Assembly (NCBI RefSeq): GCF_006345805.1
Contig: NC_043006.1
Span: forward strand, 72,726,001-72,790,000
DNA length: 64,000 nucleotides
Source of the DNA: Octopus sinensis
Taxonomy: Eukaryota
Direction of reading: 5' to 3'
Under the pieces are notes generated by a model, which saw only the letters and a program-made list of their open reading frames with translations, made no database searches and was not told where the DNA came from. Position numbers and translations under genes: made by a program. Positions 41,876 to 57,849 of the stretch are shown here, in pieces. Position 1 is the stretch's first letter, and every line of letters begins with the position of its first letter.

Positions 41876-42652
41876 TGTGTGTGTGTGTGCATGAGTGTGC
41901 GTGTGCATGTGTGTGTATATGTACAAAGGACTTCTGCACAGTTTTTGCCTATCAAATCCAATTTGAAAAGTATTTGTCAAACAACTTAAGAATAACAGAC
42001 TGAAGTAGAAGACCCTTGTTTAGGGTGCTGCATAGTGAAATCGAACCTGAAACCATGTGATTTGGAAATAGACTTCTTAAATACATACCCATACCTGCAC
42101 CTCCAAACTCAATATATATATATATCTCTCACTCCTCCTCCTCGACTCTCTCGTCACTGACATGTAACGAAAGAGAATCTATCTTTCAGCCCATTACCTT
42201 CCTAAAGACAACACGTGCTTATACTGTCTCCTCTCATAAGTTCATTTTCCTAGCGTTCAGAATAATTTTTTCTATCGTCTTGGCTTAACAACCCTCACTG
42301 TTTGTTTTTACTGTTTTGTTCTCACAGTTCTGTTCTTGTTACCACTTTCACCCTCCGCAAAAAATCCAAATTATATCTAATTTGCTTTGCGGAAAGGATT
42401 GTTTCGACAAAGTCGCATATTGTCCTTGCCTTCGAAATGTGGAGTAGATGAAACAGGGACAACTGAAGAAGGGGAATTGTTTGGTTCTTTGGAAAAAAAG
42501 TTCATTTCTATGTTTTTGTTTTTATGTTTTTGTTTCTCATTGTGTTCGACGTTTTTTTGATGTCCTGTACCCATATATGCATGTATATATACATATATAT
42601 ATGTAGGTATGTACATATATGTATGTATATATGCATATATTTATATATTATT

Positions 42653-42694
<42 letters not shown>

Positions 42695-43062
42695 TCTCCA
42701 TTACTACCACCTATGATGTGATCTCATTTATATATCCACTATTTTGAGCTATGCTAATTTTAAGGATCTTGGCACACAGCTTTGCTTCTGTAAGATGAAG
42801 TGCTTTTATTTGCTTTTATTAAGAATTGCAACCCTTTTATCTATTATTAGAATACCTGATAAGTGTAAGAATTACAATTGCTGACAAAGCTTTCACAGAA
42901 ATATTTGTGAATAGATTATATATCTTATGTCATATGAGAATATTTTAAAATGGTTATATATATATGTTGCATAATTAGATAGATAGATGGATATATTGCG
43001 AGATAGATAACACTAACAGACAGGCATGTAGGCAGGTGGACAGCCAGAGAGACAGATAGGTT

Positions 43063-43145
<83 letters not shown>

Positions 43146-43257
43146 TGATATAGATAGATAGTTAGATAGATAGATAACCAGCCAGGCAGAAGCACAGATA
43201 GACAGATGGAAGTATGGACAAATGGATAGATAGATAGATGGATAGACAGACAGACAT

Positions 43258-43313
<56 letters not shown>

Positions 43314-44189
43314 TTAGATAGGTAGATAGATAGACAGACAAACAGACAGCCAGACAAACAGACAACTAGACAAACAAACAGCCAGATAACCGGACAGATA
43401 GATAGATGGACAGATTGAGCAGTATTATCTTGCAACCCCCATTTTGCTTATAATGAAAATAAAATTATCTCTTGGGCTGTGGTAGATTTATTTAATGTAT
43501 AAGAGTGGGTTGGGCATAGAAGTTAGGTTAGTGCTCCCCAAAGTCCCACAAGCACCAGGTGTATGAAATAATTAAATAATTATGTTTATGTTTTGTGTGT
43601 AAATATATTTATATGTATATACTTATATATATGCACATCCGTACATAAATGTGTGTGTGTGTCTACACATACATATATGGATATATATGCATTCATGTAT
43701 ATGTATGAGCTTCCTATATTTATATATTACCAAGGCTATGTGGCTAAAAAGCTTGCTTCCCAACCACTTGATTCCAGGTTCAATAACACTGCATGGCACC
43801 TTGGGCAATTGTCTTCTACAATAACCCCTATTCCCTGAGCCGACTAATGCCTTTAGTATGGATTTGGTTGACAGAAATGGAAAGAAGCTTATCATATAGG
43901 CATAGGAGTGGCTGTGTAGTAAGTAGCTTGTTTACGAACCACATGGTTCAGGGTTCAGTCCCACTGCGTGACACCTTGGACAAGTGTTTTCTACTATAGC
44001 CTCGGTTTGACCAAAGCCTTGTGAGTTTGGTAGATGGAAACTGAAAGAAGCCCGTCGTATATATGTATATATATATGTGTTTATATGTTTGTGCATCTGT
44101 GTTTGTCCCCCCAACATCGCTTGACAACTGATGCTGGTGTGTTTGCGTCCCCGTAACTTAGCAGTTTGGCAAAAGAGACCGATAGAATA

Positions 44190-44477
44190 TGTGGGATGAC
44201 ATCAGCAGCCGGACGTCAGCAGCGGGGTGCGTTGACCGGAAGCTGGGGCAAGCGGAAGGGGTCAGCTGTCAAGCGTGCGCAGGGGGCGGAAATTGACCTT
44301 TCCAACGTGGGTCGTGCTGGTGACAAGACGTGCGAGGACGACGCTAAGGGTTTGGGGCTAGCAGCTGCTATCGTTAGTGTTCGGGTAGGGTGAGGAAGGA
44401 CCAGTCATCTCTGGAGGATCTCCGTCACCACGAAGAGAAGGTAGGTGCCTCTATATTCAAATCGCACACTCACTACA
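44190..44477 (+). repeat. 5' LTR (288 bp)
   Basis: Differs from the 3' LTR by 7 transitions and a 4-nt G-run indel (manual alignment). Confidence 0.95.
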
Positions 44478-44489
44478 AGCTATTTTGGC
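44478..44489 (+). promoter_or_regulatory. Putative primer-binding site complementary to tRNA-Phe(GAA) nt 1-12
   Basis: AGCTATTTTGGC directly abuts the LTR. The reverse complement of the conserved metazoan tRNA-Phe 5' end GCCGAAATAGCT is AGCTATTTCGGC, an 11/12 match whose single difference is CG to TG. No canonical TGG-type PBS is adjacent to the LTR. Confidence 0.6.
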
Positions 44490-44522
44490 AGTTCGTAAAC
44501 ATTCTCATTTTTTTTCAACACG

Positions 44523-45287
44523 ATGTCTGCAAAAATTAGGATCGCCAGTGACGTCGTCAGACCTTTTAACGGCGAAGGCGATGTAGTGGCTTGGATTCGG
44601 AAAATCAGGCTGGTGGCGAGACTGCAGGGCATAAGCGACGTGGCGAGTCTTATGGCGCTGTATTTAGAAGGGAGTGCGTTGTCGCTTTACCTAGAGATGG
44701 ATGAAGAGGAACGGCTCTGCGATGAGAATATAGAGCGGCGCTTGTGTGACGCATACACGGAATGCGAGTACACAGCTTTCGCTAAGCTAGGTGCAATCAG
44801 GTGGACAGGAGGCCAGGTGGATGATTTTGCATCGGAAGCTAGAAGGCTAGCGACTCTGGCCGGTTTTGCCAGAGAAGGACTGGAGAGAGCAGCCCGACTG
44901 GTGTTCGTGAATGGGTTCCCCGACGATGTAGGGATTCACCTACAACGACTGCCCGGGGTCAAAAAGATGCCATTGAGCGAACTTGTAGCTCATGCTCGCG
45001 CGTTGACGAGACACTCTGGGCAGAAGGCGATAGCAATGGTGGTGACGGAGGCGCGTAAAGACGGACGACGTCCCGAGAAAGAGGTACAGAAGCTCACTGT
45101 GCAACGAGAGCGGCCGTTCTCAGGACGGTGTTTTAGATGCCAGGGACCGCACATGGTGCGGGACTGTATGCAGTCGGGGCCCGTTTGCTATCGATGCAGG
45201 TAGACAGGGCACATTGCCCGTGATTGCGGCCAGGGAAACGACCGCGGGGAAGTTGCTGCCTCTCGAACTTTCCCCTCAAACGAGTAG
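44523..45287 (+). pseudogene. gag: gag with two CCHC zinc knuckles and a premature stop
   Basis: MSAKIRIASDVVRPFNG...CFRCQGPHMVRDC...CYRCR*TGHIARDC. Premature TAG at 45201-45203; natural stop at 45285-45287. Confidence 0.9.
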
Positions 45288-45292
45288 AGGCG
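45233..45292 (+). promoter_or_regulatory. -1 programmed ribosomal frameshift signal (G GGA AAC plus H-type pseudoknot)
   Basis: Slippery heptamer at 45233-45239 in gag-frame register, then a 6-nt spacer. Stem 1 GGGGAAGTT / AACTTTCCCC (45246-45275). Loop GCCTCT (45258-45263) is complementary to AGAGGC (45286-45291). pol is in the -1 frame. Confidence 0.8.
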
Positions 45293-48080
45293 CTATTGGA
45301 GACGCTGCCATTGATTGACGTGGAGGCCGAGGGGGAGACGTTCAAGGCCCTTGTGGATACGGGCTGTACGACCACCCTGGTGATTTCGAGGGTGACGAAG
45401 GAATGGAACGGGGTGTGTAGTGTCTGGGCGGTCGACGGAAGCAAAATCCGTTGCAGAGGCAGCAGCAAGGTAGAGATAGTGGTGCGCGGCGCGATGCTAA
45501 GGCTACAGGCAATTGTGGTCGAACGCGTGATAAATGGAGTTGATGTGGTGATGGGGATGGACGCCATCAACTGTCTCGGTGGCGTCAGTGTTGTGAGAAA
45601 TGAGGTCACGTTCGGAAGCGTGAGGGCGTCGTGCACTGCGAGTCAGGATCGCCAGAGGGAGCAGAGCCCCGCGAGGGACTGCGCCGCTTACACCATCGAG
45701 GACAAAGACTTTCAGGCGGCGTTCGATGGTCAGCGGTGGACGATAGAGTGGAAATGGAAGGACGAGCCCCCGACACTGGAGAACAGGGTGAGCTGTTACC
45801 AGCATACCCTGAAAGGCCACGCCAGGGTTGAGTTTGAAGACGAGGTGGAGAGGTGGATCGAGAAAGGGGTCCTTGTCCCTTGGAAGGAGGAGGTAGTGGG
45901 CGGAGTGCTACCCCTGATGGCGGTGGTGCAGCCTACGAAGGGAAAAGTCAGACCGGTGCTGGACTTCAGGGAGCTAAACCAGCACATATCGTGTCACACG
46001 GGAGGTGAGGCGACAGACGTTTGTGGTGAGGCATTACGTAAGTGGAGACAGTCGACTGAGGCAGCGACGATTGTCGACTTGCGATCGGCATACTTGTGAG
46101 CGACAAACTATGGCGATATCAGCTGGTGTGGTACAAGGGCCGGACGTACTGTCTAACCAGGCTGGGTTTCGGGCTGAATTCCACTCCGATGATCATGGCG
46201 GCAGTGCTTAGGTCCGTCCTAGGGAAAGACGGCAAAATTAGAAAGGCCACCAGCTCCTACATTGACGACATTTTGGTGGCCGAAACTGTAGTGCCAGCCG
46301 ACGAGGTAGTTAGACATCTGGAGAAGTTCGGACTGATTGCTAAGCCACCGGAGTCGATTGAAGGGGGAGCCGCGCTGGGGCTGAAGCTGCGAAGAGATAG
46401 ATCAGGTGAATTGGTGTTCCAGAGAGGAAATGAAATCCCAGAGCTGAGTTCCATCGTCAGCAGGAGAGAGCTGTTCTCGGTGTGTGGGAAGTTGGTCGGT
46501 CACTACCCGATAGCTGGATGGCTGCGCACGGCGTGTAGCTACACCAAGAGACGAGCAAAAGGAGAGAGGTGGGGCGACAAGGTGGGAGAAGGGACGGTGG
46601 CGATGATGCAGGAGATCCTAGAGAGGACAAGAGCGGAAGACCCGGTCAGGGGGAACTGGTACGTGCCCAAGACGAAATGCGGGACCGTCTGGTGTGATGC
46701 TAGCAGTATAGCGATAGGGGTGGTGTTGGCAATCGAAGGCACTGCGGTGGAGGACACGGCCTGGCTTCGGAAAGCAGATGATTTCAACCACATCAATGTC
46801 GCCGAATTAGATGTGCTGCTGAAAGGGGTGAACTTGGCCTTGAAATGGGGGCTGCGCACGATTGAAATGCGGACGGATTCGGCCACTGTGCTTGGCTGGG
46901 TAGGATCGGTGATCACCGGTGACAGGAGAGTGCGGACGAAAGGTGCTGCGGAGATGTTAGTGAAGTGCCGTCTAGGAGTTCTAGGTGAATTGATCGCCGA
47001 ATTCGGACTGAAGCTGAACGTGGTTTTCGTGCCTTCGGAGAAAAACAAGGCGGACGTACTGACCAGGGTGAAAAGGGCGTGGTTGGAAGAACCGGAAAGG
47101 GATAGCTGCGGCGTGTCGATTGGATGACTCTGAACTGAAGAAACTGCACGCTATGCATCACCTGGGTGTGGACAGGACCCTGTATCTGGCAAAAAAAATT
47201 GATGCTGACGTCACCAGGAGAAGCGTCCGGAAGGTGGTCGGGAGCTGCGACAGGTGTCAGTCCATCGACCCTGCTCCGTGTGGGCATGAACAGGGAAGCC
47301 TTTCCGTGGAGCAGAACTGGAAAAGGCTAGCTGTGGATGTGACACATTACCGCCAGCGAATGTACCTCTCCATGGTCGACTGTGGGCCGGGCCGGCTGGC
47401 CATTTGGAGGGAGTTGAGATCGGGCATTGCTGACGAGATCATGCAGATCCTGAACGGGATATTTTTAGAGAGAGGTCCCGTGGAAGAACTACTGATGGAC
47501 AACGGGGCGGCGTTTCGTTCGGAAGCATTGAGGGTTATGCTTGATCGGTGGAACGTGCGACGCTTGTTCAGAGCAGCGTATAGGCCGGGCGGTAACGGGC
47601 TCGTGGAGAGGCACCATCGGACAGTCAAGGCCATAGCGGAAAGGGCACATTTCGCTGCTTGAAGCAGTTTTTTGGTACAACTTGTCTCCCCGATCCGGAC
47701 AAGCTGAGGAATCTGTGCTGCAGAGAGCTGTGTTCAAATATGAATGGAGGCACCCGAGCAAAGCGCCGGAGGGTCACGAGGAAGAGAAGGGACCTGTTCG
47801 CGTGAAAATAGGGGAGGAAGTCTGGGTCAAGCCACCAAAGGCGCGCTGTACGTCTCAACGGAGCAGAGGAACGGTGACGGCGATCAATTCCAGAAGCAAC
47901 GTATCCGTAGATGGCACACCACGACATGTCTTGGACCATCGCAGGATTGTTGCTTCGACGGACGATGATTCAGGAGAGGGGGAGAATGAGGAGCCCAGCT
48001 TGAGAAGATCTTGACGAGTAAGGCGCTCTCCCGGTTGGATGGTAGACTACAACATGGAGCGGAGAGATTGTGATCTTTAA
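45233..48080 (+). pseudogene. pol: pol (protease, RT, RNase H, integrase) with frameshifts and a stop
   Basis: PR ALVDTG; RT VLDFRELN, VDLRSAY and YIDDILV; RH WCDAS, VAELD, TDS and NKAD; IN HHLG..CDRC, AVD, MDNG and GLVER. Frameshifts near 46097, 47120 and 47650; TGA at 48012-48014. Confidence 0.92.
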
Positions 48081-48093
48081 GATCAGGGTGGCG

Positions 48094-48385
48094 TGTGGGA
48101 TGATGTCAGCAGCCGGACGTCAGCAGTGGGGTGCGTTGACCGGAAGCTGGGGCAAGCGGAAGGGGTCAGCTGTCAAGCATGCGCAGGGGGGGGGCGGAAA
48201 TTGACCTTTCCAACGTGGGTCGTGCTGGTGACAAGACGTGCGAGGACGACGCTAAGGGTTTGGGGCTAGCAGCTGCTATCGTTAGTGTTCGGGTAGGGTG
48301 GGGAAGGACCAGTCATCTCTGGAGGATCTCCGTCACCACGAAGAGAAGGTAGGTGCCTCTATATTCAAATCACACATTCACTACA
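48094..48385 (+). repeat. 3' LTR (292 bp), preceded by a purine-rich tract
   Basis: AAGATCAGGGTGGCG at 48079-48093 lies immediately 5' of TGTGGG. Confidence 0.95.
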
Positions 48386-48448
48386 GAATAAGTACTAGGC
48401 TTCCAAAGAATAACTCAAACAAGTAAAAGAGTAAATATATATATATGG

Positions 48449-49417
48449 ATTAGAAGCAGCTCAAGGTATATAAACAAAATTGAACACACATACACAAGGA
48501 GTGTGTGTTGTTTGATCATGGGTCAGCTGCAGTTTTTAGGCATAAGAAAATATATTTTCTACGTGCCTGGTGTAAAAAACAGCTGAAAATAAGTCACAGT
48601 CAAGCAAGATAACTCACATCAGATCTGTAACAAAGATGAAAGGTCTGGAACACTTGAGGGGTGCAGGTCTTATCCTGTTACATTAAATTATTTGTTGAAG
48701 GAAAACCAAGACTTCGAATATCTTCAACAGCATAAATAATATTTATTTTTCTGGATTCGCAATAATATATATACATATATTTCCTTCAGGGCGAACCGGT
48801 AGCCATTGGGAGCTAGTCACAGTTGTTAAATTGTGTGAGCCAAATGCTGTCTTGTTCCAGCGTAGAGTAGCTTCGCCACGTGTTGGTTTGCTTGGGAGAG
48901 CCGTGAGGATGCGTCCATTCAATTCGGCTGCAGCTTCGAAAGAGAGCGATACAGCGGGAAATCTTCCTGTTGCTAGTTCTCTGTGCATGCACATGAGGGA
49001 ACTTCCAGCAGCCTACCGGAAGAAATCAAACTCTGTGCATGTCCACTGAAGACTTCCAAAATGGCGTCACTACAGATCTTATCTCATAGCGACAGACATT
49101 GATGTTTCGTCATTGTTTTGACTTATCAATGCCATATACTCAACAAGGTCCCCTGCAAGGTATATCGCTAACTATGACTACATGCTAAAAGGTTTAGACA
49201 CCATCTGCTAGCATGTCTCAACGCTTCATACCACAGAAGAAATTCAAATAGGAATTAGAAGTAGCTTGAGGTATATAAACAACATTGAACACACATACAC
49301 AGGGTATGTGTGTTGTTAGTTCGTGGGTTGGCTGTGGTTTTTCAGCATAAGAAAATATAATATTCTCTATGTGCCTGGAGTAAAAAGACAGCTGAAAGTA
49401 AACCATGGTCAAGCAAG
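48449..49417. repeat. Diverged direct repeat of about 160 bp (48449-48608 and 49254-49417)
   Basis: ATTAGAAG...GTCAAGCAAG alignable over the whole length with roughly one difference in five, mostly transitions (estimated by eye). Confidence 0.8.
48790..49160. promoter_or_regulatory. CpG-rich, non-repetitive segment; candidate promoter or first exon
   Basis: Locally high CpG content in an AT-rich background, with CCGGAAG (ETS-like, about 49016), CAAAATGGCG (YY1-like, about 49057) and a GTTGCTAG half X-box. No convincing ORF. Confidence 0.4.
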
Positions 49418-50390
49418 TGATCTGGAGCAATGTGAAATGAAGTGTTTTGCTCAAGAACACAACATATTTGCTTGGTCCAGAAATTAATCCCATGATTGTT
49501 AGATCATAAGTGCAACACCTGAACCACTAGGCTATGCACCTTCGTATGTATGTGTGTGTATGTGTATGTGTGTGTGTTTGTGTGTGTATCTCCTGTGTGT
49601 ATCTCCCATGTGTTTTACAGCCTGTGATAGTTGTAAATGAGTGCCACCTTTATATAAGTAGTGTCTTTCATTTCCAATTTTCCATGGAAATGTATCTGGT
49701 TATGGGAAAATATTACCTTGCTTGGAAACAGGTAGGGATTTAGGGATTGGTGACAGGAAAGGCATTCAGTCATAGAAAGTGAACTTTATCAAATTCCATC
49801 CTGCACAAGCAAGCTACACATTAAAACAAATATGTGTGTATATATATATATATAATTATCGAGTTGGATAAAATATCCATGTGAATGATTATTCAGATTT
49901 AAATGTTTGGATTGATACTTAATGAGAGTCATAAGGGAAGTTAAAGAGTCTTTACTGTCCTGTGAGAGTAAGGGAGGAAAATAAAGGATATTTTCATAAG
50001 CAAAAATAAACTTAATACAAGAGAAGTGTAAATTAGAAAGTGGGAGCACAAACTGTTTATAATAATAATAATGAAATTATTGTGTATAGTGCTCAAGTGC
50101 ACTACAACTCATCAAAGGTGCATGTATAGTACATAGAATTATGTACAAAAGTCAGGAAGGTGAACAGTGTATGAGTCATGATATACTTGTGGGTATGCAT
50201 ATGGAGGTGGGGATATCAGGTGTAGTGTTGGCGAATTTCAGGAAGCATGAAGGTTTCAAAGGATGCAATGTCTCAGCAAGTAACAACTGATACAAGTTTT
50301 CCAATGTATGCCACAACATGTATACAGATATGAATACATGCATACACACACATGCATATATTCGTATGTGTGTGTGTGTGCGTGAACTTG

Positions 50391-50434
<44 letters not shown>

Positions 50435-50669
50435 TATATATATATAGTAAAGATGTGGTTTTCCCCATTCACTTTTTTGTTGTCTTATACTCTGAATTTC
50501 TTGAAATTCCTCTAAACAATATTTGGATCTACTTCTCATACATGAGGAATTATCTTGAATGTTTGTCCTACTTGCATTCATTGGTGTCTCATTGCTTGAT
50601 ATAATTAACCAAATTCATCTAACACTGAGAGTTTTTATTGATACCTGCCTGGATTTTTAAGTTCCTTTT

Positions 50670-50702
<33 letters not shown>

Positions 50703-50943
50703 CGCACATACTTAACGAAACACATACACAAATGTTACAGTTTATAAATAATATGATAATTAAAGATTGTACTCAGTACATGGTGCAGAGTGTATTCATA
50801 AATTTATTTAAACTGAGAAGTTGGTTGGCGACTACTTGACTTTCATTATTCTTTGCAGTCTCTCAGCTGACACCTGAAAGATTGCAAATCTTGAAATTTC
50901 AGTAGTGGCTAACAACCTTAGTTCAAATAAATATAGACATGGA

Positions 50944-50974
<31 letters not shown>

Positions 50975-51110
50975 ATTTGTGTGCATGCATGCATGCATAC
51001 ATACATACATACATATATATATACATATATATATATATGTATATATACACACATACATACATGCATGCATACACACACATATTTATCCATACATGTATAT
51101 ATATACACAC

Positions 51111-51147
<37 letters not shown>

Positions 51148-51162
51148 TACATACATATATAT

Positions 51163-51193
<31 letters not shown>

Positions 51194-51278
51194 CCACACA
51201 TACATACATACATATATATATTCATGTATACACATCATGACCTGAACTACCTGGCCACTTAGACACACAAATACGGAG

Positions 51279-51309
<31 letters not shown>

Positions 51310-52466
51310 CATATTTGTGTTCATGGCCAAGAGACTTACCATTTAAATTGCCAAGTGTACTAAGCCGAAAATAGATCTTAGGGATTAACAACAACTTACT
51401 CTACCACTACACAAAAACCAAAGTTGTTTTGTTAGTTTGCAGAGTCAAATTGAATAGTTACATCTGTATATAACTTGAAAAAGTGTGTGCCTCTCTAAAC
51501 TGATTTGCCCTTGATAAAAAATTGGAAGGCAGAGTTTTTGGTGCTGTCTTTGGGGCCAATAGGATTGGGTTATGGGACTGGCTGCATTGACAGAATAAAA
51601 TTGCAACTGTTGTAGATTTCTGATTAATTTTTCAATGTAGAAGGTATAGGGGAAGGCATGTCTATGGCTGCAGGAATGAGTGTGCGGTGAGGGGGAGGAG
51701 GAGGAGGAGGAGATGTGTGTGTGTGTGTGTGCATCTTCCTGTCTTGACAAGTAGGAATGTGTTTCATTTTTGTAACATTGAAGTTAATACCAACTCATTG
51801 TGCCAGTTAGACAGTCTTTTGATTTCTTCACAGGCCTCCACAGACCGCTGGACTGCTGCTTGCTGCTCATCTCCTGCTTTTATGATGTCTTGATGCTAAC
51901 ATGAGACAAATCTCCCTCTGGATAGAACACTAGCCCATCATAAGTAGCATTTTCTATATGAAAATCAAAACTCAGTAGGCACAGTCGTGACTGTGTGGTA
52001 ACAAACTTGCTTCCTAACCACATGGTTCTGAGTTCAGTCCCACTGCGTGGAACCTTGGGTAAGTGTCTTTAACTATAACCACAGGCCAACCAAAGCCTGG
52101 TTAATAGATTTGGTGAAAGATGCTCATCATATAGTTGAAATTTATAGAAACACAAAAGACGAAGACAGGTGTATGAACAACTAGCAGGTGTATTAATTTG
52201 ACGCTTGGGAAAGTGAAAGTCTATTACGGTTAAAGCCCGCATATTTATATATATATATATAATATAAGAGATAATGGTGTCATTGATACTCGTGCTATAG
52301 ACAGACCGTAGTTAAGGTCCAGATTCAGTAATATTGCGAATAAAGGGTTCAATGTTGGTTCTATGTCAGCATGTGTATATAAGAATTTTTTATCTTATTA
52401 TGCAAAAAATTCTTATATAATATAATATGTATATGTATATATATATATATATATAATATATATATA

Positions 52467-52520
<54 letters not shown>

Positions 52521-52543
52521 GTATATATATATATATGTGTGTG

Positions 52544-52858
52544 TGAGGAGGCACAATGGCCCAGTGGTTAGGGCAGCGGACTCGTGGTCGTAGGATTGCG
52601 GTTTCGATTCCCAGACCAGGCATTGTGAGTGTTTATTGAGCGAAAACATCTAAAGCTCCACGAGGCTCCAGTAGGGGGCGGTGGTGAACCCTGCTGTACT
52701 CTTTCCCCACAACTTTCTCTCACTCTTTCTTCCTGTTTCTGTTGTATCTGTATTTCAAAGGGCCAGCCTTGTCACACTCTGTATCACACTGAATCTCCCC
52801 GAGAACTACGTTAAGGGTACATGTGTCTGTGGAGTGCTCAGTCACTTGCACGTTAATA
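52544..52858 (+). mobile_element. tRNA-derived SINE
   Basis: GGAGGCACAATGGCCCAGTGGTTAGGGCAGCGGACTCGTGGTCGTAGGATTGCGGTTTCGATTCCCAG head with A/B boxes, followed by a unique body. Confidence 0.75.
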
Positions 52859-56000: not shown

Positions 56001-57052
56001 TGAGTACTGGATTACTCCTCCAACAAAGTTTATAGCATTGTGCCAAAATTTGAAACCTGTATTAGAAATCATAATTATTATAATGATGTTGATCATTCTT
56101 TTCTACTCTAGGCACAAGGTCCAAAATTTTTGGGGAGTGTGGGGGCGGGGCAGTCGATTAGATCGATCTCAGTATGCAACTGGTACTTAATTGACCCTGA
56201 AAGAATGAAAGGGAAAGTCAACCTTGGCGGAATTTGAACTCAGGACGTAACGACAGACGAAATACCTATTTCTTTACTACCCACAAGGGGCTAAACACAG
56301 AGAGAACAAACAAGGACAGACAAACGGATTAAGTCGATTATATTGACCCCAGTGCATAACTGGTACTTATTTAATCGACCCTGAAAGGATGAAAGGCAAA
56401 GTCGACCTTGGCGGAATATGAACTCAGAATGTAAAGACAGACGAAATACCGCAAAGCATTTCGCCCAGTGTGCTAACGATTCTGCCAGCTCACCGCTTTA
56501 ATGATGATGATTATTATTACAGGACTAATGATGATGGTAGAGCGGTCGTAGTCAGTATTGTTGTCATGGTTGTGGTGGTCATGGTGGAGGTGGTGGTGGT
56601 AGTAATGGCATTGGAGATGACTACGACTATGATGATGATAATGATGATAATGATGATGATGGCAACATTTAATGAACTCTCCTTCCTCACTCTACCCCCT
56701 CCCTGCTCGCAATATTATTTATTTTCGCAAGCCAAGTAACAGCCACAAGAAGTGCTGAGAGACTTGAGTTTCTGTAAACACTCCGACAAGGCTCCAATTA
56801 AGTGTTCCATTGCTAACTCATACACTTGATTTACACAGGTGTATTGTCAAAGGTGACCTCAAGAAGAGGAGCAACGTGCCGGAAACAAAGCAGACCATCT
56901 TAGCAATAATCTTCCTTTGAGTAATACAGTCACAGAAATAGATTTTGATTTCATCATTATTCAAGGTATACTTATGTGGAACATATATACACACATATAT
57001 ACACACATATACATATAGATATTGATATGTGTGTGTGTGTATATTATATATT

Positions 57053-57101
<49 letters not shown>

Positions 57102-57536
57102 ATATATATACATATATATGAATATTATATATATAAGATCAAGGTCTAATATCTGTTCTTAACAGTTTAATATATATATGTGTGTGTGTGTGTGTGAGTG
57201 TGTGTCAGAGAGTATATATATGTGTGTGTATGTATTGTATGTATATGAAGGGTGTAACCAGGAATTTAACTGAGGAGTTTGTCATTAATAAAAATGAATC
57301 TGTCATTAGCCATCTAATTTGCAAAAAACACAAAACTAAAATGTTAGATAATAATTATATTTGCATAGAGTGATAAGGATAGGTTGGATTGCCTGAATCT
57401 GACTAATTTAGCCATAGCCAGGTGACTATGGCTAAGTGTGAGTAAAGTAGTAGACACACACACACACACACATATACATATGTACCAAAAAAGAAATAAT
57501 TCATCGTCACTAAAAGTGACCAAGGATACAGTAGCA

Positions 57537-57648
57537 CCAGCATTGCTAGATATAGGAGTTAAAGACCCCCTCAGCCACAGAAAGTCACATGTTCTATTTG
57601 AACTGACAGAGGAGTCAACAACTTTAATCCTATTTCTAGCAATGTTGG
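57537..57648. mobile_element. Short foldback MITE
   Basis: CCAGCATTGCTAGATATAGGAGTTAAAG ... CTTTAATCCTATTTCTAGCAATGTTGG imperfect TIRs of about 28 bp. Confidence 0.6.
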
Positions 57649-57748
57649 TATATATATATATATAGTTATCAGTAATAATATAGGGTGAAATTAATTAATT
57701 TGGAATAATCATTAATTTCACGAGGTAGATTTCGACATTTACATATAA

Positions 57749-57781
<33 letters not shown>

Positions 57782-57849
57782 TATAAATTAGAGAAAAACC
57801 ACTATTATGCAATTTGTGCCAAATGACTTCCCTCTCTGTGTTTGGCCTC

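Follow-up and report, generated by a model that had tools for sequence, protein, structure and literature searches.

Known modes of minus-strand priming

Minus-strand synthesis in LTR retroelements is started in three described ways, i.e. from the 3' end of a host tRNA, from an internal or half tRNA, or from the 5' end of the element's own transcript. Canonical 3'-end priming is used by retroviruses, Ty1, Ty3 and most LTR elements. The host tRNA is selected by complementarity to a primer-binding site (PBS) next to U5, and this site begins with TGG and complements the 3'-terminal ~8-18 nt including CCA. tRNA-Phe is a known primer of this kind for IAP and IAPE elements. In Drosophila copia (and Ty5), a 5' fragment of a host tRNA rather than its CCA end provides the primer 3'-OH ("half-tRNA"). 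The copia site pairs with an internal stretch of initiator tRNA-Met ending in the anticodon stem, and the primer is about 39 nt long. In Tf1, Tf2, Tj1 and the wider Tf1/sushi group, a short PBS without TGG lies directly after the LTR, and the primer is the 5'-terminal ~11-12 nt of the element's own RNA, released by a cut at the end of an RNA:RNA duplex that in Tf1 requires the element's RNase H. The plus-strand stop is expected at the physical 5' end of the primer. Finally, the Dictyostelium Skipper elements lack both a TGG site and a self-complement in the LTR, and contain a polypyrimidine tract, and no primer has been identified for them.

The octopus element described here compares differently with each of these systems. 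Its PBS is short, lacks TGG and abuts the LTR as in Tf1, yet no complement is present in any LTR examined. Like copia, it appears to depend on a host tRNA, but the site matches the extreme 5' end (nt 1-12) of tRNA-Phe instead of an internal stretch of initiator tRNA-Met, so that the cut would fall in the D stem. In comparison to canonical elements, the opposite end of the tRNA is matched. In contrast to Skipper, there is a clear candidate RNA. Full-text literature searches and several reviews yielded only the three modes above and no report of a PBS complementary to a tRNA 5' end, although older subscription papers and Repbase notes were not covered and a prior mention is thus not excluded. 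An Arabidopsis 5'-tRF study concerns a fragment that resembles, rather than complements, a normal 3'-end PBS.

The octopus element and its primer-binding site

The analysed window is a stretch of 64,000 nt from Octopus sinensis (GCF_006345805.1, contig NC_043006.1, positions 72,726,001 to 72,790,000 of the forward strand). Positions 44190-48385 (+) hold a 4.2-kb LTR retrotransposon with the following features:

44185-44189 (+), left copy of the 5-bp target-site duplication, GAATA
44190-44477 (+), 5' LTR (288 nt, TG...CA)
44439-44447 (+), splice-donor-like AG/GTAGGTG in the 3' part of the LTR
44478-44489 (+), PBS AGCTATTTTGGC, complementary to tRNA-Phe nt 1-12 with 11 Watson-Crick pairs and one U:G
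44523-45203 (+), gag ORF (226 aa, CCHC zinc knuckles), apparently intact
45224-46099 (+), pol piece 1, aspartic protease and N-terminal part of the reverse transcriptase (RT)
46096-47127 (+), pol piece 2 in another frame, C-terminal part of RT (YIDD), DUF7047 and RNase H
47120-47662 (+), pol piece 3, again in another frame, integrase (HHCC and the rve core)
47682-48014 (+), pol piece 4 in yet another frame, C-terminal tail of integrase
48072-48093 (+), near-palindrome GATCTTTAAGATC overlapping the polypurine-like tract AGATCAGGGTGGCG, directly before the 3' LTR
48094-48385 (+), 3' LTR (292 nt)
48386-48390 (+), right copy of the target-site duplication, GAATA

The features expected of an LTR retrotransposon are thus present, i.e. 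two direct LTRs with TG..CA ends, a target-site duplication, a PBS slot after the 5' LTR, a polypurine-like tract before the 3' LTR and gag-pol coding. The LTRs differ by 7 substitutions and a 4-nt G-run indel, and 5 of the 7 substitutions are CpG transitions. The frame change at about 46096 marks a broken pol, which lies in at least four ORF pieces, so this copy is defective. The closest pol proteins on record are from Octopus bimaculoides (80%) and O. sinensis (72-87%). The window contains no second copy, no solo LTR and no tRNA gene. Other Octopus copies were not examined, as the only Octopus proteins on record lie in mid-pol. Long AT/AC/ACAT-type microsatellite arrays surround the element (42540-43700, 50300-52550 and 56960-57790), and an Rfam search of 43500-48600 gave only sub-threshold microRNA-like hits (mir-297 and mir-466) in a TG/CA repeat. 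Two 78% identical copies of a short repeat (43897-44022 and 51976-52101) flank the element. By eye, these resemble a tRNA-derived SINE, but neither ARAGORN nor Rfam called them. The left copy contains GTTTACGAAC, whose complement also occurs just after the PBS (44492-44501), which is taken to be chance.

The observation made in the initial annotation, that the 12 nt directly after the 5' LTR are complementary to the 5' end of tRNA-Phe, is confirmed. The 5' LTR ends ...CACTCACTACA at 44477 and 44478-44489 read AGCTATTTTGGC, with the boundary fixed by both LTR copies and by the target duplication. Human tRNA-Phe(GAA) starts GCCGAAATAGCTCAGTTGGGAG (a forward primer quoted in PMC10505166), so the site complements nt 1-12 with one U:G pair at tRNA position 4. 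The base preceding the site, the last A of the LTR, is invariant and faces tRNA C13, so pairing stops at the LTR edge. The proposal that the single deviation stems from CpG decay is plausible, given the predominance of CpG transitions between the LTRs and two relatives that keep CG at this position. No TGG abuts the LTR, as had been noted, and the nearest one starts 8 nt in (TGGCAGTTCG...). An exact 12-mer match has a probability of about 6e-8 per tRNA per register, i.e. about 2e-4 after allowing for roughly 50 tRNAs and 65 registers, before the relatives are counted.

Related elements share the 12-nt slot

A gag search found 23 homologues at 36-48% identity with invariant C-C-H-C columns, all from metagenome or SRA assemblies. 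Searches with two pol pieces found the family in Octopus, Argonauta, Aplysia, Plakobranchus, Oratosquilla, Palaemon, Trinorchestia, Chionoecetes, Petrolisthes, Watersipora, Hydra, Trichuris and several hundred further contigs. A scan of JGI metagenomes gave one locus, while scans of IMG/VR and GTDB gave none. Only the 5' parts of relatives were inspected, with flanks of 700-1300 nt; these loci are numbered with the prefix L below. In 12 of them, one 12-nt motif of the form AGCTAT-NNN-GGC lies 20-440 nt before gag, and it directly follows ..A(C/T)A in the 11 for which upstream sequence was included. The forms of the site are distributed as follows:

AGCTATCTAGGC: L001, L003, L004, L005, L007, L010 and L012
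AGCTATCTGGGC: L011, a near-identical copy of L010/L012 in which one transition keeps a G:U pair
AGCTATTTCGGC: L008 and L014 (the octopod Argonauta hians)
AGCTATCCCGGC: L009
AGCTATCGAGGC: L015 (Trichuris suis, KL363358.1, positions 456-467)
AGCTATTTTGGC: the window

Across 11 non-redundant elements whose gag proteins are 32-55% identical to that of the window, columns 1-6 (AGCTAT) and 10-12 (GGC) are invariant at 2.0 bits and columns 7-9 vary, whereas information content drops to about 0.1-0.3 bits from column 13 on. Upstream, only the last three bases of the LTR are well conserved. In L003, L007 and L009, the contig also shows the polypurine-like tract and the LTR start, so the LTR lies between this tract and the motif. 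The Argonauta locus starts exactly at the motif, which lies about 440 nt before gag there, and its LTR junction was therefore not seen. No site was obtained from three further relatives: the T. trichiura contig stops inside gag, L006 is degenerate and lacks the motif, and L013 (Logan SRR22824279 contig) begins at positions 1-20 with an Illumina adapter (ACACGACGCTCTTCCGATCT) followed by a poly-A/T run, 88 nt before gag, which is an assembly artefact. Taken together, the 12-mer is the PBS slot of this family, with sharp edges at the LTR end and at base 12.

Further features recur around this slot. A splice-donor-like AG/GTRRG motif (for example AAG/GTAAG or AAG/GTGAG) is found in the 3' part of the LTR, within 130 nt upstream of the PBS, in 7 of 10 family members (the window, L001, L003, L004, L007, L008 and L015; 15-98 nt before the PBS), while about 0.03 per element is expected by chance. 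It could be a 5' splice site in R/U5, as in some retroviruses, or part of an RNA structure. The near-perfect palindrome before the LTR, which overlaps the start of the G-rich polypurine-like tract, is likewise conserved in the family (window 48072-48093; GATCTTAAGATC at L003 196-215; L007 about 712-735; L009 about 413-433). The LTR of the T. suis element (L015 331-393) shows a clear TATA box (CGTATATATACG) and an AATAAA signal about 50 nt further on, giving a short R and a U5 of about 60 nt before the PBS. The octopus LTR has no such clear signals, only TATATT 20 nt before its end. In L001 (Logan SRR34274704 contig), the sequence upstream of the PBS (positions 1-200) matches eukaryotic 18S rRNA (Rfam SSU_rRNA_eukarya, model positions 1297-1447, 39.9 bits, E 7e-10) with universally conserved bases mutated, which points to either an LTR that captured an 18S fragment or a chimeric assembly.

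Complementarity to tRNA-Phe

The reverse complement of the motif, GCC-NNN-ATAGCT, has the shape of a tRNA 5' end, i.e. an acceptor stem starting GCC, then U8, A9 and G10-C11-U12. The variable triplet falls on acceptor positions 4-6, where tRNA-Phe differs between taxa. Three lines of evidence bear on this match. First, the predicted intact form AGCTATTTCGGC is present in Argonauta hians and in L008 and is a 12/12 complement of human-type tRNA-Phe. Second, the T. suis element carries AGCTATCGAGGC, the exact complement of GCCTCGATAGCT. All three unique mature tRNA-Phe(GAA) sequences of C. elegans begin GCCTCGATAGCTCAGTTGGG, and this string occurs only three times in the corresponding table, always in tRNA-Phe rows (Supplementary Table S3 of PMC8192933). 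All three variable positions are changed in step with the nematode tRNA, whose 5' sequence had been put forward before the Trichuris locus was retrieved and was confirmed by the table afterwards. The tRNA-Phe sequences of Octopus, Argonauta and Trichuris themselves were not examined, so human and C. elegans stand in for them; in this view, tRNA-Phe(GAA) would begin GCCGAAATAGCT in the cephalopods. Third, the commonest marine variant (CTAGGC) complements GCCTAGATAGCT. As a control, 121 stretches beginning GCCTAGATAGCTCAGTNGGNAGAGC were sampled from prokaryote genomes. ARAGORN called 107 tRNA-Phe(GAA) and 7 tRNA-Thr(GGT), i.e. 94% tRNA-Phe among the tRNAs called, and the pattern starts at or within one base of tRNA nt 1 in almost all. 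This 5' end is therefore a genuine tRNA-Phe type, although the hosts of this variant and of the CCCGGC variant have not been identified, no eukaryotic tRNA with these 5' ends was found, and no paper text contained GCCTAGATAGCT or a tRNA starting GCCGGGATAGCT. On a rough gag tree, the TTCGGC-type elements do not form one clade, which fits a site that follows the host rather than the descent of the element, but the tree is weak.

The interpretation offered in the initial annotation is partly supported by these data. Its core, a PBS for tRNA-Phe nt 1-12 that is neither a Tf1-type self-primer nor a 3'-end site, holds up and is strengthened by conservation of the slot across a wide animal retroelement family and by the occurrence of the predicted intact form in two relatives. 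However, a family consensus deviating at the 12 nt had been specified in advance as evidence against the proposal, and, taken literally, this condition is fulfilled, as most sampled relatives read AGCTATCTAGGC and not AGCTATTTCGGC. This criterion has to give way to a test of host covariation, and the variable positions do track host tRNA-Phe in the one further case that was compared, the T. suis element against C. elegans. Moreover, priming by a 12-nt fragment and RNase H cleavage remain inference, and the label "Gypsy" is not established.

Proposed mechanism

The most likely explanation is that the 12 nt after the 5' LTR are the minus-strand PBS and pair with nt 1-12 of cytoplasmic tRNA-Phe, i.e. 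the 5' strand of the acceptor stem, U8, A9 and the first three bases of the D stem. The zinc-knuckle nucleocapsid region of gag may help tRNA-Phe, or a 5' fragment of it, to anneal. By definition, the U5/PBS boundary is where the 3'-OH of the primer sits, so that in this model the primer must end at tRNA nt 12. This requires a cut between U12 and C13, either on the annealed tRNA, which is considered probable, or beforehand. The foremost, albeit tentative, candidate for this cut is the element's own RNase H, in analogy to Tf1, where RNase H cleavage at the end of an RNA:RNA duplex frees an 11-nt primer, while copia provides the precedent for a 5' tRNA fragment as primer. A 5' fragment of a host tRNA made by endonucleolytic cleavage is consistent with the geometry here, since pairing ends at the LTR edge opposite tRNA nt 12. 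The RNase H catalytic motifs are intact in the family consensus and in the window copy. The new 3'-OH would then be extended into U5-R. Later, plus-strand strong-stop DNA would copy the 12-nt RNA primer until it runs off tRNA nt 1, which would explain why conservation and complementarity stop exactly there and how the three variable bases come to match the tRNA-Phe of each host. The only modified base in nt 1-12 of eukaryotic tRNA-Phe is m2G10, which does not block copying.

The position, length and conservation of the site, its complementarity, the host covariation in two host groups and the absence of a self-primer or a 3'-end site are borne out by the sequences, whereas it is deduced that this RNA primes, where and by what it is cut, and that the primer is copied. 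None of the latter steps has been observed; strong-stop cDNA, small RNAs and cleavage of an RNA duplex or a tRNA were not examined here, and a 12-nt tRNA fragment ending inside the D stem is not a commonly reported tRF class. It is very likely that the site complements host tRNA-Phe nt 1-12 by selection rather than by chance, and likely that this RNA is the minus-strand primer, while cleavage by the element's RNase H is possible but somewhat short of an even call.

Alternative explanations

The best surviving, though unlikely, alternative retains the site and the tRNA but assumes a 5' tRNA-Phe fragment already made by a host nuclease, which anneals as a 12-mer without participation of the element's RNase H. 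The complementarity and conservation data do not reveal who makes the cut, and 5' tRNA fragments are abundant in animals; for example, most age-induced tRFs in C. elegans are reported to come from 5' ends. Yet, 5' tRFs are usually 14 nt or longer and end in the D loop or the anticodon loop; a range of 16-35 nt is given in PMC7515703. Several host RNases also leave 2',3'-cyclic phosphates, which cannot prime, and Tf1 offers a precedent for cutting at the end of the duplex.

A coincidental likeness to tRNA-Phe, with the 12-mer being a conserved PBS for an unidentified RNA or another cis element such as a dimerisation or packaging signal, is considered very unlikely. The motif does contain small palindromes (AGCT, CTAG), two of the variants lack a eukaryotic tRNA counterpart and the priming RNA has not been observed. 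On the other hand, exact 12/12 complements to two different host-appropriate tRNA-Phe sequences occur in cephalopod and nematode elements, variation is confined to acceptor positions 4-6, the edges of conservation coincide with the LTR end and tRNA nt 1, and the prokaryotic control is dominated by tRNA-Phe.

Self-priming of the Tf1/sushi type, in which the transcript's 5' end folds back on the site and is cut, would suit a short, TGG-less PBS abutting the LTR, but is effectively refuted at the sequence level. A better match to the element's own transcript had been named beforehand as a result that would overturn the tRNA-Phe reading. In the LTR and leader of the window, the best 12-mer pairs at only 7 of 12 Watson-Crick positions, and a 450-nt search reaching into the host flank gave 9 of 12 at 44110, outside the element. 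In 10 loci with up to 450 nt of upstream sequence, the longest complementary run is no better than in shuffled sequences. No other 12-mer within 2 mismatches exists on either strand of the element. A second tRNA-binding box, as in the bipartite PBS of Ty3, is also not supported. CGCTCTCCC at 48024-48032, about 60 nt before the 3' LTR, is a perfect complement of tRNA-Phe nt 18-26 in the D arm, but about one such 9-mer is expected by chance in 4.2 kb and no box was found at this place in relatives. RNAduplex predictions for whole tRNA-Phe against the leader gave meaningless long-range pairings. Finally, a canonical 3'-end PBS at the downstream TGG (TGGCAGTTCGTAAAC, from 44485), which would call for an Octopus tRNA ending ...ACGAACTGCCA, can be dismissed, as this sequence is not conserved in any relative and overlaps the conserved 12-mer, no cytoplasmic tRNA ending ...GTTTACGAACTGCCA is known, and there is no run of 9 or more bases complementary to the tRNA-Phe 3' end near the LTR.

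Classification of the element

The pol domain order, protease-RT-RNase H-integrase, is that of Ty3/gypsy (Metaviridae) and retroviruses. However, the RNase H matches only the cellular and retroviral type (PF00075 and PF13456) and not the Ty3 type (RNase_HI_RT_Ty3 or RT_RNaseH_2), RVT_1 is weak, and DUF7047 lies between RT and RNase H. Signatures of BEL/Pao (Belpaoviridae), i.e. Peptidase_A17 and DUF1758/DUF1759, gave no hits at E <= 0.1. Sequence and profile searches of the PDB found only remote retroviral, foamy-virus and caulimovirus RTs, at E of 1e-9 to 1e-7 in the profile search, and a confident AlphaFold model (pLDDT 87) used in a BFVD fold search matched caulimovirid and retroviral Pols at 13-18% identity. 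No RT phylogeny was made, and the element is therefore referred to as an LTR retroelement of unresolved superfamily.

Implications

A conserved site for the extreme 5' end of a tRNA would add a fourth mode to the textbook list of minus-strand primers. It would be tRNA-dependent like copia and, like Tf1, rely on a short primer defined by the 5' end of an RNA. If correct, a 12-nt RNA joined to strong-stop DNA, a cut after U12 in the D stem and a plus strand stopping at tRNA nt 1 would be expected. PBS finders such as LTR_FINDER, LTRdigest and LTRharvest pipelines align tRNA 3' ends and would thus miss or mislabel this family. Similarly, silencing by 3' tRFs that target the PBS would not touch these elements, whereas 5' tRFs could.

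In its broadest form, which is possible but tentative, a whole, widely spread lineage of animal LTR retroelements (cephalopods, gastropods, crustaceans, bryozoans, Hydra, Trichuris and many marine metagenome contigs) starts reverse transcription from the 5'-terminal 12 nt of tRNA-Phe, cut out of the annealed tRNA by the element's own RNase H, which would combine features of copia and Tf1 priming. As the plus strand would copy the primer, the 12-nt site would be rewritten to the tRNA-Phe of the current host and would record this host as well as past host switches. The host-matched triplet could also help to assign orphan metagenomic retroelement contigs to host groups and reveal horizontal transfer.
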